A stretch of DNA of 64,000 bases from Setoptus koraiensis (lineage: Eukaryota; Animalia; Arthropoda). Shown here in pieces: positions 31,984-40,229 of the stretch. The position numbers were made by a program, and so were the translations under genes. Under the pieces are notes generated by a model. That model ran no database searches. It was not told the origin of the DNA and worked only from the letters and a program-made list of their open reading frames with translations. The stretch spans positions 9,362,001 through 9,426,000 of the forward strand of contig CM106586.1 in assembly GCA_048013815.1 (NCBI GenBank), in the 5' to 3' direction. Within the stretch, counting starts at the first letter, position 1. Every line of letters starts with the position of its first letter.

Positions 31984-33876
<1,893 letters not shown>

Positions 33877-34527: not shown

Positions 34528-34599
34528 AGGACCAAGGCGGGTTTGAACCACCGACCTCTCGATCTGCAGTCGAATGCTCTACCACTGAGCTATTGGTCC
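34528..34599 (-). tRNA. tRNA-Cys (anticodon GCA)
   Basis: Minus strand GGACCAA TAGCTCAGTGGTAGAGC A TTCGA CTGCAGA TCGAG AGGTC GGTGG TTCAAAC CCGCC TTGGTCC T folds into a complete cloverleaf with A and B boxes and U73. A TTTTT Pol III terminator follows (plus-strand AAAAA 34520-34524). Confidence 0.96.
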
Positions 34600-34803
34600 G
34601 CTTCATGGAGGCATAAGAGACATAAATTGCTTTGTTCTTCATGCAACTACAACACGTTCTCAGCCGAAGCCAGTTATCAAGACTTGATCAAACTGTACAT
34701 CGTGCAGACCACATTCGAATACAACGGATATCTGTTTATTATTGTTTCCTCACAAATAAATCAAATGTAATTTTTATAATTGTTTCAGTAGCAGTGGTGG
34801 TAG

Positions 34804-37800
34804 TTAAGGCGATGCCTGAAACCTCCTTCTTCTAGGATGTGGGTAGGGGGGCTGTTGGTGATATTGGTTCTGCTGAGACTGGTGATGGTACAAATGTTGT
34901 TGCTGTTGTTGTTGCTGTGGCGTCTGGTGCTGAGACAAATGCGGATTGTGGTGGGGGTGCTGCAAATGAGGGTGCATGTGGGACGGACCGTGCGGATGCT
35001 GGTGCATCACATTATGCCCTTGTAAATGTGGAGTTTGATTTGGACCTAAATGTATAGAGGACGCGTGAGGATGTAAGTTGTTACCATTGGAAGCACTACC
35101 ACCACCACCTATTCCCATAGAGGGATGATGATATAAAGGTTGTGCATTAGATGCATGTGAGCGAGCGGACGATGAGATATGGTGATGATGGGGATGTTGT
35201 TGCATCTGCTGATGATGGTGCGGTTGTTGCTGGTGCATCATTGGCTGATGATTCATATAGATGTGAGAAGAGTTATGGTGTTGAAGGGGCCCATAATGAC
35301 TACTCGGGTGCTGTTGAGGTTGCTGCATTTGAGGTTGCGGCATTTGAGATTGTTGCTGATGCTGTTGAGCTGCTATTTGTTGTTGTTGCGGTTGATGGTT
35401 TAAGGATGATGAGGACGGCTGATGAGAAACGTCTCGATGTTGCTGCTGACTACCATCGGTTGGATTTGTTTTTCTGGATGATCTCCTCAATTCTTTCTTG
35501 TAGAACCTGTATAGTTTCTTTGGTTCATATTCAGTGAATTTAGCAACAAATGTCCATAGATAGTTACGCCATTCTTTCATCATTCTTTCGTCATTATGAT
35601 AATCCTGTAAACATTCGCCTATCCTTGCGCCAATCCTGGTCAAACAGCTACGAAATTCGCTTGATCTGTTGTCTATGCCTCTTGGTAAGTCACTAAGCTG
35701 GCCGATAATCTTCTTAGTGGGGCGCATCTTTTCTTTGCATTGTAGAAATATATCATCGCTCAGCTCACCTTGTATCACAGTTTTACTTGAACCACTTCTT
35801 CTATCACCATGTAATCTCTTTCTATCTGAAAGAGATAACTTGTTTTTATTTTCAAGTGACTTCTTAGTTTTATCTCGCCTATTCTCACTGATGAGAATGT
35901 CATTGGTTTTCTTATTTCGCCTTTTAGGCTCCTTTGTTGGATCTCTCGGCTTTCTAGGCTTTCTAACTCTAGAAGAATCTGATATGAGCTTCCCGTCTGG
36001 GCCAACTGTATTATTTTTGAGTATTCGAGCACCGGATTTCCTACGCTTTCTTACACCGGTATTCTCGTCATTAAGATCATCATCCATATCGCCGAGTTCG
36101 CCATCCGCAAATTTCCTTTTACGTCTCTTAAGTTGTTGTTGTGACTTTTTGGCTGCTTTCATAGCCAAGTATTCATTGATCGCTTGAGATTCATTCATGT
36201 TAAGAGGGCTAGAGAAACGTTTATTATTTCGTATGAGACGTCGAATCTCAGTCTCGGTATAACCTTGGATCAATTCTTTGACGACAGACTTGCTACCGGG
36301 AGGGCGACCTCTTCTCTTGGGCTTTCCATCATTCCCACCATCTGAATCATCACTGTGACCATCACCTTTGATCTTATTTGGATCGAATTCTTCGCCACTA
36401 TCTGAATTAGCACCGGATTGTTTTGCCGATCTCCTACTTCTAGGAGGAAGGTACATCTCCATTTGGGCTTGAATTTTTTCTTCTTCTTCGATTTTAGCTC
36501 TTATAGCATCTGGTATAATTGCATCCCAATCTTTTTCTATATTGTTACTGATGCCATTGTCTGTATTTCTCGGCAATAGAGTGCCATCAGCGGCAAATTT
36601 CGGTACAGAACTTTTAGTTGTAGGAGCTATGGTCGCAACTTCCTCCTCGTTGAAATTGAAACTAGCAATCTTGAAGGCAGATAGAAGCTCATTACCTACA
36701 GAAGGGGGACCCTCTTCCCGAGTTTCCGCTCTATTCAAAACTTCATCAATATCTAGATGAGGTTCTTCATCACCATCTTTGTCGCCCTCTTTGAATAATT
36801 CTTCTGCACCAAACTTCAATATTGCAGCTAGTTCCTCTTTACTTGATGGAGCGGATGCACCATTCCCAGAGCTGCTTCCTTTAGAAAGGACCGTTCTACC
36901 CGTAGTGTCCATTCTTTGGATCACAAGATGATCTAAGACCATTTTGCGTTTGGCCCTTTCAATAATATCCTCCTCAACACTTCCTTTTGTAACTAACCTG
37001 TAGATATTAACACGATTTTTTTGACCTATCCTATGGGCTCTAGCTTGCGCTTGCAAATCATTTTGTGGATTCCAATCAGAGTCAAATATAACTACAGTAT
37101 CGGCAGTTGCAAGATTAATACCTAATCCACCTGCTCTGGTTGAAAGAAGGAAACAGAAATCAGGAGAATCGCGGGCATTAAAATGATCCAACGCTTGACG
37201 TCTAATTTCACCGCGTAGGGATCCATCTAACCTTTGGAATGGAAATCTTCTGTAAGTCAAATAGTCGCTTAGAATATCCAGCATGCGTACCATCTGTGAA
37301 AAAATCAGTACACGATGTCCGGTTTCTTTTAGGCGGCATAGTAACTTATCTAATAATAATAATTTACCACTACCTCTGACGAGCCTCGGCAAAGGATCTA
37401 AATGGTTCAATTCATCTGTAGGCCTTATTAGTGAAGCGTGGTTGCAACATTTTTTAAGTTCCATCATAATGTTGACAAAACCAGACAAACTTCCTTTGAG
37501 ACCCTTAGACAAAGCCTTGTAATTCTTTGTCAGAATCCATTTGTAGTACTGTTTTTGCAAAGAGGTCATTTCAACTCTTAATAGCTGTTCTGTTTTAGAG
37601 GGTAGAGATTTTTCGACATCTTTCTTAACTCGGCGTAGTAGATAAGGCTCCAATTGTTTGTGAAGTTTTGAGTAACCTTTGTCCGCGGCATCGCGATGTT
37701 CATACTCAAAGTCATCCCAGGCTGGAAAATCTTGGGGCATGATAAAATGTAAAAGCGCCCATAATTCACGTAGAGAATTCTGCAATGGTGTTCCTGTAAC

Positions 37801-39639
37801 CAGTACGCGATGATTAGTATTAAAATCTATGAGAGATCTATATAATGATGAATCATCATTTTTGAGTCGATGAGCTTCATCGACTCCTAGGACAGCCCAA
37901 TTGATTGCCCCGAGCAAACTTTTATCTTTGAGTAATATTTCATATGTAGTTATCAGGACATTGAATTTGAGTCTTCTATTAGGATGGCACCACTCGTATG
38001 CTCTTATCATGCTGCGGGATGTAACATCGCCAAGATAAACTACAACATTCATCTCTGGTGACCAGTTATCAAACTCGCGTTGCCATGAATTCAAGGTTGA
38101 CAGAGGTACGACTAGAAGGAATGGACCGTGAAGATTGTGTTCGTTGAAAAGATAGGACAAGAATCCAATAGTTTGTATTGTCTTTCCTAAGCCCATCTCA
38201 TCAGCTAATATTACAGAGTTGTGTTTAGACCATGAGTGTGCTAGCCAGTTGAGACCATCCAGTTGATAATCACGTAATTCGAGATGAGGGCGCTGTTCCT
38301 GGTCCGGTTCGTCTTTATTGTGATCTTTCTCTTGATTCTTATCTGTTTGATTATCCAAATCTACATTACTTATATTTCCTAAATAGTGTGGCTGTTCTTT
38401 GAGGGCTACAAATTTTGGTCTATTACGCAAGACCTTACACATCTTACTGGGTATACAATGCGACTTCAGTCTTGTATAATACTCCTCTATTTTTTTCGGG
38501 AATTTCCTAACGATGATAGATCCATCTTCCCAGGTACATTCACTGTATGGTAGGCCTTGCCATTTGCAAAGATATTCAGTTTCATCCGCTGGTTGTTTTT
38601 TGGCATCGCTCGAGGATGATTCGCTTGAGGTGCCTGGCTTGTTAACTTCTTTGATTTTATTGTGTGATATGATTCGTTCGACGTCCATATGTTGCTGACG
38701 CAATTCTTCAGCCATTTCTTCTTGGCAATCATAGTATTCTATATCTTCTGGCGAGGCAGATTTTCGCCATTGTTTAAGCTCTTCGTCCCGTTTCCAGTAA
38801 GCCTCTATTTTTTTGATACTTTTTATATTGATGTTAGCCAGTGTTTTTTCACTTTCCCACGAATTGTGCAAATGTGACCAGCCCTTCCATTTGACGAAGA
38901 ATTGTATTTCCTTTTCTTCTGGTGGTAGCGAGGCCAGATCAGTTGGATTTGGGTCGCCATCAACTTCAACATTATAAGAAGCTGTTGCCGGACCAGTGGC
39001 TCCTATTTTGCCTAATCTATGTGTAAATATTTTTTCTACCGTTTTAACATCAGCTGGATCTTCTGTGTCGCCTGTAATATTGTCGGCTTGATTGGTTGAA
39101 TCCTCATATTCTAGTATATCATCACTATCTGTGTGATCCGAGTGTTCCTTATAGCTGACAATTTTTTTTGCCTGACGGCGCGATTTTGATCTATCACTTT
39201 GGTTTGATTTAGTTGAATTATTGTTGGCATTAGTAGTTGTTTGTTTACTCCTAGTATTTGTGACTCTTGTCCGACCCTTTCTCCTATTCCTTCTCTGACT
39301 ATTGTTCTTCTGTCTGCCCGGCAACGACGATGAACCATCTGAACCATAGTCATCATCACTCGAGGCTGAAACAGCTGATGTTGGATCATCATAACTATCA
39401 CCAGAATCATGATCTTGATCTTCTTCACTTTCAGTGCTTGATTCATCGGCGGTAGTTCTATCGTCGTCATAACTATCACCGGAATCTTCTTGGTCATCAT
39501 CATGATCATCTTCATCATCTTCGTCGGCATCATCATCGTCGTCTTCATCTTCAGTATCATCGTCATCTTCAGTATCATCATCATCATCTTCAGTATCATC
39601 ATAGCCTAAACGTCCCACGTCGACGCGTCTTGTAGCCAT
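34804..39639 (-). CDS. CHD1: Chromodomain-helicase-DNA-binding protein 1 (CHD1), 1611 aa, single exon
   Basis: Two chromodomains (FFVKWKGWSHLHNSWE; YLCKWQGLPYSECTWE), SNF2 ATPase motifs (ILADEMGLGKT, LGVDEAHRLKN, TGTPLQN), helicase C-lobe (LLSTRAGGLGINLATADTVVIFDSDWNPQNDLQAQARAHRIGQ) and C-terminal CHCT/DUF4208-like helix bundle (FLQCKEKMRP...WRNYLWTFVAKFT). Confidence 0.97.
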   Translation of the reverse strand: MATRRVDVGRLGYDDTEDDDDDTEDDDDTEDEDDDDDADEDDEDDHDDDQEDSGDSYDDDRTTADESSTESEEDQDHDSGDSYDDPTSAVSASSDDDYGSDGSSSLPGRQKNNSQRRNRRKGRTRVTNTRSKQTTTNANNNSTKSNQSDRSKSRRQAKKIVSYKEHSDHTDSDDILEYEDSTNQADNITGDTEDPADVKTVEKIFTHRLGKIGATGPATASYNVEVDGDPNPTDLASLPPEEKEIQFFVKWKGWSHLHNSWESEKTLANINIKSIKKIEAYWKRDEELKQWRKSASPEDIEYYDCQEEMAEELRQQHMDVERIISHNKIKEVNKPGTSSESSSSDAKKQPADETEYLCKWQGLPYSECTWEDGSIIVRKFPKKIEEYYTRLKSHCIPSKMCKVLRNRPKFVALKEQPHYLGNISNVDLDNQTDKNQEKDHNKDEPDQEQRPHLELRDYQLDGLNWLAHSWSKHNSVILADEMGLGKTIQTIGFLSYLFNEHNLHGPFLLVVPLSTLNSWQREFDNWSPEMNVVVYLGDVTSRSMIRAYEWCHPNRRLKFNVLITTYEILLKDKSLLGAINWAVLGVDEAHRLKNDDSSLYRSLIDFNTNHRVLVTGTPLQNSLRELWALLHFIMPQDFPAWDDFEYEHRDAADKGYSKLHKQLEPYLLRRVKKDVEKSLPSKTEQLLRVEMTSLQKQYYKWILTKNYKALSKGLKGSLSGFVNIMMELKKCCNHASLIRPTDELNHLDPLPRLVRGSGKLLLLDKLLCRLKETGHRVLIFSQMVRMLDILSDYLTYRRFPFQRLDGSLRGEIRRQALDHFNARDSPDFCFLLSTRAGGLGINLATADTVVIFDSDWNPQNDLQAQARAHRIGQKNRVNIYRLVTKGSVEEDIIERAKRKMVLDHLVIQRMDTTGRTVLSKGSSSGNGASAPSSKEELAAILKFGAEELFKEGDKDGDEEPHLDIDEVLNRAETREEGPPSVGNELLSAFKIASFNFNEEEVATIAPTTKSSVPKFAADGTLLPRNTDNGISNNIEKDWDAIIPDAIRAKIEEEEKIQAQMEMYLPPRSRRSAKQSGANSDSGEEFDPNKIKGDGHSDDSDGGNDGKPKRRGRPPGSKSVVKELIQGYTETEIRRLIRNNKRFSSPLNMNESQAINEYLAMKAAKKSQQQLKRRKRKFADGELGDMDDDLNDENTGVRKRRKSGARILKNNTVGPDGKLISDSSRVRKPRKPRDPTKEPKRRNKKTNDILISENRRDKTKKSLENKNKLSLSDRKRLHGDRRSGSSKTVIQGELSDDIFLQCKEKMRPTKKIIGQLSDLPRGIDNRSSEFRSCLTRIGARIGECLQDYHNDERMMKEWRNYLWTFVAKFTEYEPKKLYRFYKKELRRSSRKTNPTDGSQQQHRDVSHQPSSSSLNHQPQQQQIAAQQHQQQSQMPQPQMQQPQQHPSSHYGPLQHHNSSHIYMNHQPMMHQQQPHHHQQMQQHPHHHHISSSARSHASNAQPLYHHPSMGIGGGGSASNGNNLHPHASSIHLGPNQTPHLQGHNVMHQHPHGPSHMHPHLQHPHHNPHLSQHQTPQQQQQQQHLYHHQSQQNQYHQQPPYPHPRRRRFQASP

Positions 39640-40229
39640 GCTTTGTTATAAATGATGGTGCTCTTGTTGTTGCTAGTATTATTTATACACTTATTATTGA
39701 TAATGTGACAACAACGAGCACTGTTGTTGTATATTATTCCTGTATCCTTTATTATTATTATTATTGTTATTTAAATATTTATATTAAGGAGTTGTGAAAC
39801 GTGAAAATGCCTGATGACATTCAACAGTAATATAGTGCAGCTATTAATGTTTTAATGATTCTCGGTAATGAGCACTATCGCTAGTCTATTGCGAAAAAGT
39901 AACACATTTTTGCCATTTTTTAAAGCGCCAAACTTGAAATTCCTTTTTTTTTGCGACGCGACACAAACGCGCCCCCACAGCACAATCATTCCTCACGGGC
40001 ATGGCAAAAATGTGCTCTGTTGCAACGCGTCCTCCCTCTCAACGGGCATTGCCTAAACAACAAGTTCCATCCAATGTAAATACTTGATTGTTGTTATCGT
40101 TATTATTAAAGATAATTATTGTTTGCAATTCGTCATAAATGACCACCAGGCAACATTCCAGCATTACAACAGATCGAGCCTATTGCTTGTTGGCAATTTT
40201 AAAATACTCGGCAATAGGCCAGTGACACG
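39640..40229. promoter_or_regulatory. Bidirectional promoter region shared by head-to-head CHD1 and POP1
   Basis: 590 bp between two divergent start codons, AT-rich with a short CG-rich core near 39945-40030. No individual elements verified. Confidence 0.6.

Follow-up and report, generated by a model that had tools for sequence, protein, structure and literature searches.

Domain layout of the CHD1 gene in Setoptus koraiensis

Our analysis of a 64-kb stretch of the Setoptus koraiensis genome (here referred to as the window) revealed, at positions 34804 to 39639 of the negative strand, a CHD1 orthologue that the ORF list gives as one unbroken open reading frame of 1611 amino acids (aa) plus the stop codon. 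The encoded protein matched human CHD1 chain 9ear_W with 1177 bits in phmmer, and in a maximum likelihood (ML) tree of arthropod CHD1s it grouped within the chelicerate/acariform sequences. All features described below lie on the negative strand as well. Tandem chromodomains occupy approximately aa 225 to 420 (positions 38380 to 38967), where the Pfam Chromo model matched two stretches (E value of 5e-24) and where the phmmer alignment paired the protein with human CHD1 residues 123 to 477, including the KWKGWSH motif. They are followed by the SNF2 ATPase motor at aa 458 to 872 (positions 37024 to 38268), composed of SNF2-rel_dom (aa 458 to 736, E value of 1.4e-90) and Helicase_C (aa 759 to 872, E value of 1.1e-24). 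All motor motifs are there, namely GLGKT at residue 483, DEAH at 587, TGTPLQN at 615, and QAQARAHRIGQ at 863.

An acidic stretch with an AT-hook-like KPKRRGRPPGSK motif was located by alignment and hhalign at aa 1078 to 1125 (positions 36265 to 36408), directly N-terminal of the SANT region. This segment, which is kept across CHD1s in general, was recognized by hhalign with probabilities of 95.2 (A1 versus A2) and 99.1 (A3 versus A2). It is succeeded by a vestige of SANT consisting of helices 1 and 2 only (aa 1126 to 1161, positions 36157 to 36264; hhalign, PF18375, tblastn, and AF2), by a basic helical extension modeled by AF2 (aa 1162 to 1178, positions 36106 to 36156, beginning with KKSQQQLKRRKRKF), and by a K/R-rich linker of ~115 aa (aa 1179 to 1294, positions 35758 to 36105) that is disordered as judged from its composition and AF2 pLDDT values of 42 to 53. 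Over aa 1167 to 1290, the composition yields a net charge of about +21. The helical CHCT domain (DUF4208) spans aa 1295 to 1391 (positions 35467 to 35757; PF13907, E value of 6e-16), with the CHD1-like_C match itself at aa 1296 to 1382 scoring 59 bits against a cut-off of 28.3. This domain was modeled with pLDDT values of 93 to 97 and matched the human CHCT structure 2n39 both in phmmer (7e-21) and, as the sole significant hit, in Foldseek (TMt of 0.78). The translation ends in a low-complexity, Q/H/P-rich tail (aa 1392 to 1611, positions 34807 to 35466), in which contigs show repeat-driven alternative joints. Hence the chromodomains, the motor, and the CHCT domain are all matched by Pfam, the motor motifs are complete, and a single ORF runs across the site of interest, as a previous sequence-only reading of the locus had proposed.

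Remnant and missing part of the SANT-SLIDE domain

The same reading had suggested that the protein lost most of its SANT-SLIDE DNA-binding domain through an in-frame deletion. Pfam, hhalign, AF2, and Foldseek agreed on the loss and left only 36 residues, aa 1126 to 1161. In the scan with SANT and SLIDE models that the reading had suggested as a check, PF18375 (SANT-HL1) scored about 15.7 to 21 bits, below its cut-off of 34.4, and PF23588, the CHD1 SLIDE/HTH model, had no match in the window protein in the Pfam scan. At an E value of ≤1, PF23588 matched 10 of 10 reference CHD1s and 0 of 18 members of the clade described below. The hhalign comparison of A3 with A2 recovered the vestige with a probability of 99.1; homology to the DNA-binding domain ended at aa 1159, and no profile homology was found past that residue. 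When four reference DNA-binding domains were used as tblastn queries, matches were confined to positions 36166 to 36279, and no SLIDE-like coding sequence was found elsewhere in the 64-kb window. The AF2 model placed one helix of the vestige at aa 1129 to 1138 and the start of the second at aa 1148, from where an unbroken helix continues to aa 1178 (pLDDT of 85 to 92); no secondary structure was predicted in aa 1179 to 1294. A Foldseek search with this model returned no SANT-SLIDE structure, only CHCT.

Landmark distances in the window protein were then compared with those in six reference CHD1s. The interval from WDxIIP to SANT measures 93 aa in the window protein (87 to 92 aa in the references), SANT helices 1 and 2 measure 36 aa in both, and the linker to CHCT measures 139 aa (76 to 163 aa in the references), while the remainder of the DNA-binding domain after SANT helices 1 and 2, 160 to 170 aa in the references, is not there at all. 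These distances are as expected if precisely the 160- to 170-aa domain core was lost and the linker kept its usual length, and they bear out the earlier estimate of ~150 to 180 missing residues. The missing ~165 aa comprise the third helix of SANT, the helical linker, and the complete SLIDE. In profile, structure, and length comparisons alike, the folded SANT-SLIDE core is missing, and the protein is, as proposed, a CHD1 that naturally lacks its DNA-binding domain.

The peptide highlighted in the sequence-only reading had been placed at the right coordinates, as it corresponds to aa 1124 to 1166 and the vestige proper to nucleotides (nt) 36157 to 36264; its second half, however, had been misassigned. 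The segment NMNESQAINEYLA, taken for the end of SLIDE, falls on SANT helix 2 in both MAFFT and hhalign (probability of 99.1), and NMNESQAINEYLAMKAAKK, read as the SLIDE C terminus, likewise aligns to SANT helix 2 (consensus KRLESIAxDAELQEK). Nor is there a clean SANT-to-SLIDE junction at nt ~36200, since the missing block starts only after aa ~1161. Of the proposed in-frame deletion, the continuous frame stands, but a single deletion event is not supported by the sequence: the vestige runs into a diverged basic helix and a disordered linker.

Distribution of the loss among mites

Alignment with other mite CHD1s, which had been suggested as a way to date the loss, showed that the absence is common to 17 distinct CHD1 sequences, Aceria tosichella among them. 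In ML trees, sequences lacking the domain fall into a single clade inside the acariform mites (SH-aLRT/UFBoot of 100/100), in which the window sequence is sister to the remaining members (99.2/100). On the basis of these sequences, the loss is ancestral to the whole clade and not peculiar to the S. koraiensis genome. We therefore consider it probable (about 0.8) that the window gene represents the orthologue of CHD1 in a mite of the eriophyoid (gall/rust) type and that the core of the DNA-binding domain was lost in the stem lineage of this clade. A tie of the loss to linker length or to a miniaturized genome, raised in the sequence-only reading, is speculative; CHD1 of another mite, Sarcoptes scabiei, which is also small-genomed, keeps both domain models.

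The 36-aa vestige is itself deleted in most clade members, with differing deletion boundaries, and the WDxIIP-to-CHCT interval shrinks to as little as 128 aa. Since the paired sequences P0001 and P0006 (91/94) differ in state and the boundaries differ as well, the vestige was lost at least twice within the clade; internal nodes are too weak for a full count of independent losses to be taken from the tree. A first quick tree, built from chromodomain-to-bridge columns, split P0003 from P0004 even though their motors are 96% identical, whereas the ATPase-core tree united them at 100/100, and for this reason we rely on no more than the clade as such and the basal position of the window sequence. 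The remnant is conserved at 56 to 58% among the window sequence, P0001, and P0002, and the K/R-rich linker shares only 27 to 28% identity with P0001 and P0002. The window motor is 84% identical to that of oribatid CHD1 and 90 to 91% identical to those of clade members, which, together with the complete set of motifs, indicates that the gene is under strong constraint. Across the 17 lineages, identity amounts to 85 to 98% in the ATPase and 60 to 66% in CHCT.

Such an absence might arise from an assembly collapse or mis-join that dropped a domain present in the real genome. Nothing positive speaks for this reading beyond the fact that support for the junction comes from contigs already assembled. 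At the junction, independent contigs bridge the site without gaps: a 10,482-bp Logan contig from X1 spans positions 34800 to 39484, a 5,074-bp Logan contig from X3/X4 spans 35554 to 39484, and across nt 36100 to 36270 these contigs of two independent studies have 0 gaps, with 2 to 5 base differences over 4 to 4.7 kb. Moreover, the site carries no repeat, and an equal or larger absence recurs in 16 further sequences that stem from different samples or species, one of which, P0001, was confirmed to encode this architecture in a single ORF on its own, unrelated contig. A collapse is thus refuted for practical purposes and the least probable of the alternatives. Slightly less improbable, though still very unlikely, is a strongly diverged SLIDE-like fold hidden in the ~130 K/R-rich residues after the SANT remnant, an outcome that the sequence-only reading had named as fatal to its claim. 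The region is indeed basic, like DNA-binding surfaces, and MAFFT sets a clade-conserved GPDG(E/K)PLP opposite the ILPDGDxKPQ near the end of SLIDE; hhalign, suboptimal alignments included, nevertheless lent no support to this motif as a SLIDE-end remnant and found no match to SLIDE columns. Pfam detected SLIDE, Myb, or HTH matches in 0 of 18 clade members (E value of ≤1), and neither the AF2 model, with its pLDDT of 42 to 53 and lack of secondary structure, nor Foldseek disclosed a SANT-SLIDE fold. In addition, the segment is conserved at only 27% within the clade and has the length of an ordinary SLIDE-to-CHCT linker, and the whole WDxIIP-to-CHCT interval of other members can be as short as the 128 aa noted above.

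DNA binding could also be supplied in trans, by a second CHD1/2-type gene, a split-off SANT-SLIDE gene, or a partner docking on the remnant or on CHCT. The conservation of the remnant at 56 to 58% would fit a kept protein contact, and in yeast, SANT region D1033-D1038 contacts the chromodomain-ATPase linker helix (PMC6118821). Yet the rest of the window holds no SLIDE-like coding sequence, each eriophyoid-type source yielded a single CHD1 and Aceria tosichella a single protein in a word search with aa 1040 to 1400, CHCT included, and neither this search nor the tree disclosed a domain-bearing sequence in or next to the clade. The remnant itself, moreover, is deleted in most members, and invertebrates normally have one subfamily-I CHD (PMC9113485). 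We consider supply in trans unlikely, albeit less so than the other alternatives. If the gene were decaying, or already without function, after loss of an essential domain, this would agree with yeast truncations suggesting that such a loss cripples the enzyme (PMC3155300). Such a relic is nonetheless highly improbable, as the 1611-aa ORF is intact with all motor motifs present, and conservation of the ATPase (85 to 98%) and CHCT (60 to 66%) across so deep a clade is incompatible with neutral decay.

Comparison with known remodellers and possible function

Our preferred reading thus remains a constrained CHD1 that lost the core of its DNA-binding domain. By descent, the mite protein is an orthologue of yeast Chd1, Drosophila Chd1, and human CHD1/CHD2. 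Tandem chromodomains, an SNF2 motor, a bridge and WDxIIP region, an acidic/RGRP segment, and CHCT are common to both sides, whereas the ~165 aa of the third SANT helix, the helical linker, and SLIDE are missing from the mite protein. The chromodomains, Snf2 ATPase, CHCT, and phylogenetic position of CHD subfamily I were hence all found, but not SANT-SLIDE. Its loss is unexpected, since SANT-SLIDE is regarded as a defining feature of the subfamily, whose SANT, SLIDE, and DUF4208 architecture was called "tightly conserved" in a survey of CHD evolution (PMC9113485). Engineered counterparts are the Chd1 1-1010 truncation, Chd1-Ume6, and Chd1-AraC/streptavidin, which likewise combine motor and chromodomains with removal of the native SANT-SLIDE and illustrate the capacities and limits of such a protein (PMC3155300, PMC4864466). 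These constructs are laboratory-made and most also lack CHCT, whereas the mite protein is natural, keeps CHCT, the basic linker, and, in this species, the 36-aa SANT remnant, and is maintained across a whole clade. In most organisms, SANT-SLIDE of CHD1 and of ISWI, a HAND-SANT-SLIDE remodeller with a related motor, reads linker DNA and spaces nucleosomes (PMC3155300). The mite protein is not an ISWI, as it has chromodomains and CHCT and no HAND, SANT, or SLIDE match in Pfam. The Snf2 motor of CHD1L/ALC1 belongs to the CHD1-like branch, and CHD1L/ALC1, too, lacks SANT-SLIDE; in phmmer, matches to PDB chains 7otq and 7enn were restricted to the motor (aa 452 to 970). CHD1L, however, has a macro domain and lacks chromodomains and CHCT, and the mite protein, with both of the latter and no macro-domain match in Pfam, does not fit this class either.

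Yeast Chd1 needs SANT-SLIDE to bind nucleosomes, to couple ATP hydrolysis to sliding, and to function in vivo, and when cut before the domain it loses detectable nucleosome/DNA binding, sliding, and stimulated ATPase activity in vitro (PMC3155300). A domain-less protein might therefore be nearly inactive unless compensated. On the other hand, a Chd1 motor with foreign binding modules in place of the native domain still slides nucleosomes (PMC4864466). In yeast and mouse, CHCT makes direct contact with Rtf1, and in vitro, CHCT also binds double-stranded DNA and nucleosomes (PMC12390759). The mite enzyme would still translocate DNA at SHL2 under chromodomain gating and may still reach transcribed genes through its chromodomains and a CHCT-Rtf1/Paf1C contact, but linker DNA would no longer be sensed or gripped by a folded module. 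An unspecific DNA tether might be provided by the RGRP motif and CHCT and, more speculatively, by the basic disordered linker. This would make the protein a nucleosome mobilizer or assembler that is coupled to transcription but does not sense linker length, with regular spacing left to other remodellers such as ISWI. The gene was found in no run on record as RNA.

We found no published description of a CHD1 without its DNA-binding domain in gall mites. Tentatively, and with rather less than even odds, the eriophyoid mites as a whole, a lineage rich in species, may organize their genic chromatin with a CHD1 devoid of any linker-DNA sensor or replacement. If so, a folded SANT-SLIDE would be dispensable for the essential in vivo job of CHD1 in an animal, and its loss may have lifted the lower limit of ~19 bp that the domain imposes on linker length, making unusually short nucleosome repeats possible in the 30- to 40-Mb eriophyoid genomes. 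Altered nucleosome repeat length or phasing would be the predicted chromatin phenotype in gall mites. With the domain deleted, the stump repeatedly eroded, and the motor 85 to 98% identical, the clade constitutes a natural separation-of-function experiment, and the high conservation of motor and recruitment domains makes it a natural test of what the DNA-binding domain is for. It raises the question of which CHD1 roles, among transcription-coupled nucleosome turnover, H3.3 deposition, and spacing, need linker sensing, and it supplies sequences for direct biochemical comparison of mite CHD1 with and without a grafted oribatid domain. Eriophyoid genomes have been characterized by "simplification by domain loss" (PMC7738191), to which CHD1 would add an example from chromatin.

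Domain content of the Setoptus koraiensis CHD1

The CHD1 gene occupies positions 34804-39639 of the window on the minus strand as one uninterrupted open reading frame (ORF) of 1611 amino acids, and its top solved relative is human CHD1 (9ear_W; 1177 bits). Pfam matched two chromodomains in the N-terminal part, SNF2-rel_dom (aa 458-736; E value of 1.4e-90), Helicase_C (aa 759-872) and the CHD1-specific C-terminal domain CHCT (PF13907; aa 1296-1382), in agreement with the sequence-only reading, which had described a continuous frame with chromodomains, ATPase and CHCT present. The N-terminus contains an extreme run of D/E residues (aa ~14-60; 39485-39640, minus strand), and the C-terminus is a low-complexity, Q/H/P-rich tail of ~210 aa (34807-35466, minus strand). 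Approximately 200 bp downstream of the stop codon, a tRNA-Cys(GCA) gene lies on the same strand (34528-34599), and the adjoining single-exon gene (31984-33876, minus strand) encodes a U2AF65-like triple-RRM protein with a long His/Asn/Ser-rich insert.

The stretch at 36165-36265, where an in-frame deletion of most of the DNA-binding SANT-SLIDE domain (DBD) had been proposed, codes for aa ~1125-1159. Pfam covers the CHD1 DBD by PF18375 (SANT and helical linker 1) and PF23588 (the CHD1/Hrp3 HTH, that is, SLIDE). In the HMM scan suggested by the sequence-only reading, PF18375 scored 15.7-20.9 bits, below its gathering score of 34.4, and PF23588 did not match the window protein at all. Similarly, the human DBD crystal structure 4b4c aligned convincingly by phmmer for its first ~25-40 residues only. 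We then compared landmark spacing with six SLIDE-bearing CHD1s (two oribatid mites, Halotydeus, Sarcoptes, Limulus and a vertebrate CHD2). The interval from WDxIIP to SANT measures 93 aa in the window protein and 87-92 aa in the references, SANT helices 1-2 span 36 aa in both (aa 1126-1161, 36157-36264, in the window protein), and the linker to CHCT measures 139 aa and 76-163 aa, respectively. The rest of the DBD, 160-170 aa in the references, is missing, close to the 150-180 aa originally estimated. These spacings agree with a loss of the DBD's folded core (SANT helix 3, helical linker and SLIDE) in which the flanks stayed in place along with a linker of ordinary length.

The segment NMNESQAINEYLAMKAAKK, previously taken for the end of SLIDE, aligns instead to SANT helix 2 (consensus KRLESIAxDAELQEK); plain comparison, MAFFT and profile-profile alignment ruled out a SANT-to-SLIDE-end junction there. 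When alignments A3 and A2 were compared by hhalign (probability of 99.1, E value of 5.5e-19), homology stopped at aa 1159, and none of the suboptimal alignments matched the SLIDE columns. A diverged SLIDE might still have been hidden in the K/R-rich region that follows; however, structure prediction and search gave no such fold. From a 28-sequence alignment that purposely included DBD-bearing CHD1s, AlphaFold2 predicted a short helix (aa 1129-1138), a single long helix (aa 1148-1178; pLDDT 85-92), a region devoid of secondary structure (aa 1179-1294; pLDDT 42-53) and the CHCT helical bundle (pLDDT 93-97). The sole significant Foldseek match in the PDB was the human CHCT domain 2n39, and SANT-SLIDE structures were absent from the matches. 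The linker (aa 1167-1290) contains 31% K+R, carries a net charge of +21 and is 27-28% identical between close relatives, compared with 90-91% for the motor. In a tblastn search of the full 64 kb with reference DBDs, the SANT vestige alone matched (36166-36279).

Integrity of the locus

It is very unlikely that the missing DBD reflects a collapse in the assembly, as the site contains no repeat and other species show a matching CHD1 architecture. At the level of assembled contigs rather than raw reads, Logan contigs from sequencing runs X1 (10,482 bp; 34800-39484) and X3/X4 (5,074 bp; 35554-39484) cross the region around 36200 without gaps and with only 2-5 substitutions, as the sequence-only reading had proposed to verify; this coverage excludes the first ~50 codons, the D/E run being passed over as a repeat. 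Run X7 leaves 36096-36257 uncovered. X1 comes from a different study than X3/X4. Although X3 and X4 are filed under separate studies and organism labels, their sets of contigs, their depths and their differences are identical; they probably represent a double deposition of a single data set and were therefore counted as one witness. Many alternative joints and loose ends occur over the Q/H/P-rich tail (34895-35377), probably because CAG/CAT-type repeats from other parts of the genome cross-match here or because of length variation. The joints at 34914-35377 fall in this repeat tail and have no bearing on the DBD loss.

CHD1 proteins without the DBD in mites

A word-seeded search with aa 1040-1400 yielded 51 proteins, of which 17 lack both PF18375 and PF23588 in precomputed annotation (P0001-P0008, P0010, P0011, P0013-P0018 and P0021). 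P0004 belongs to the eriophyoid mite Aceria tosichella, and P0001 is a single 1554-aa ORF on its own 11-kb contig. Both models are present in oribatid mites, Halotydeus, Sarcoptes, Limulus, insects and deuterostomes. A fresh scan detected PF23588 (E ≤ 1) in 10/10 references and 0/18 clade members. In a maximum likelihood tree of the ATPase core (LG+F+G4, 1000 UFBoot), the DBD-less sequences formed one clade (100/100) nested in acariform mites, with the window protein as sister of all other members (99.2/100); a second tree agreed on the clade. The absence first noticed in the window is shared across this clade. Grouping with A. tosichella in the tree suggests the label "eriophyoid-type". In both trees the clade stem is long (0.20-0.41 changes per site) relative to within-clade branches, suggesting that the CHD1 core went through a phase of rapid change near the time of DBD loss.

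The 36-aa SANT stump is retained in the window protein, P0001 and P0002 (mutual identity of 56-58%) and absent from the remaining members, whose deletion boundaries vary: some keep the acidic/RGR region, P0006 has lost ~110 aa including it, and in others the entire WDxIIP-to-CHCT interval is down to 128 aa. P0001 still has the stump and P0006, its nearest relative (91/94; motor 96% identical), does not, which implies more than one loss; support for internal nodes is otherwise weak, and we refrain from counting further losses. Directly before CHCT, where other CHD1s carry PMHxTANxEP...GDLDP, the motif EIPHSLPSCFRKSFSNFNNRE...VKKTVI.DELD is strongly conserved in all clade members (A1 alignment columns ~255-331, P0001-P0021) but the window protein, whose copy is mostly degenerate.

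A proposed remodeller without a linker sensor

By descent the window protein belongs to CHD1 (CHD subfamily I), but its architecture lacks the defining feature of the subfamily, the SANT-SLIDE DBD. A survey of CHD evolution described the SANT+SLIDE+DUF4208 (CHCT) architecture as tightly conserved, the sole exception it reports being the fission-yeast Hrp3 clade, which has lost DUF4208 (PMC9113485). Our literature search turned up no account of a naturally occurring DBD-less CHD1. "CHD1" is absent from the Aculops genome paper, the Floracarus preprint and the eriophyoid phylogenomics paper, and the text of the first two does not mention chromatin, nucleosome or histone; the Aculops paper remarks on a trend of "simplification by domain loss" (PMC7738191). 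A tie between DBD loss and genome miniaturisation is speculation; Sarcoptes CHD1 retains the DBD (PF18375 and PF23588).

Yeast Chd1 truncated before the DBD shows no detectable nucleosome or DNA binding, sliding or stimulated ATPase, and mutants of the DBD surface consume ATP without coupling it to sliding and do not function in vivo (PMC3155300). In addition to binding linker DNA, the DBD contacts the chromodomains, and its sterically restricted access to linkers shorter than ~19 bp was suggested to bear on spacing (PMC6118821). The Chd1 motor functions with foreign binding modules in place of the native DBD (PMC4864466), and CHCT binds Rtf1 directly, spreads Chd1 over genes and binds double-stranded DNA and nucleosomes in vitro (PMC12390759). 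The window gene was found in none of the RNA runs on record. Because its motor and CHCT are highly conserved, the mite CHD1 may be viewed as a functional remodeller that is coupled to transcription and has no linker sensor. Recruitment would rely on the chromodomains and the CHCT-Rtf1 contact, unspecific tethering could be provided by the RGRP motif, the basic helix, the basic disordered linker and CHCT, and the regularity of nucleosome spacing would presumably fall to ISWI-type enzymes.
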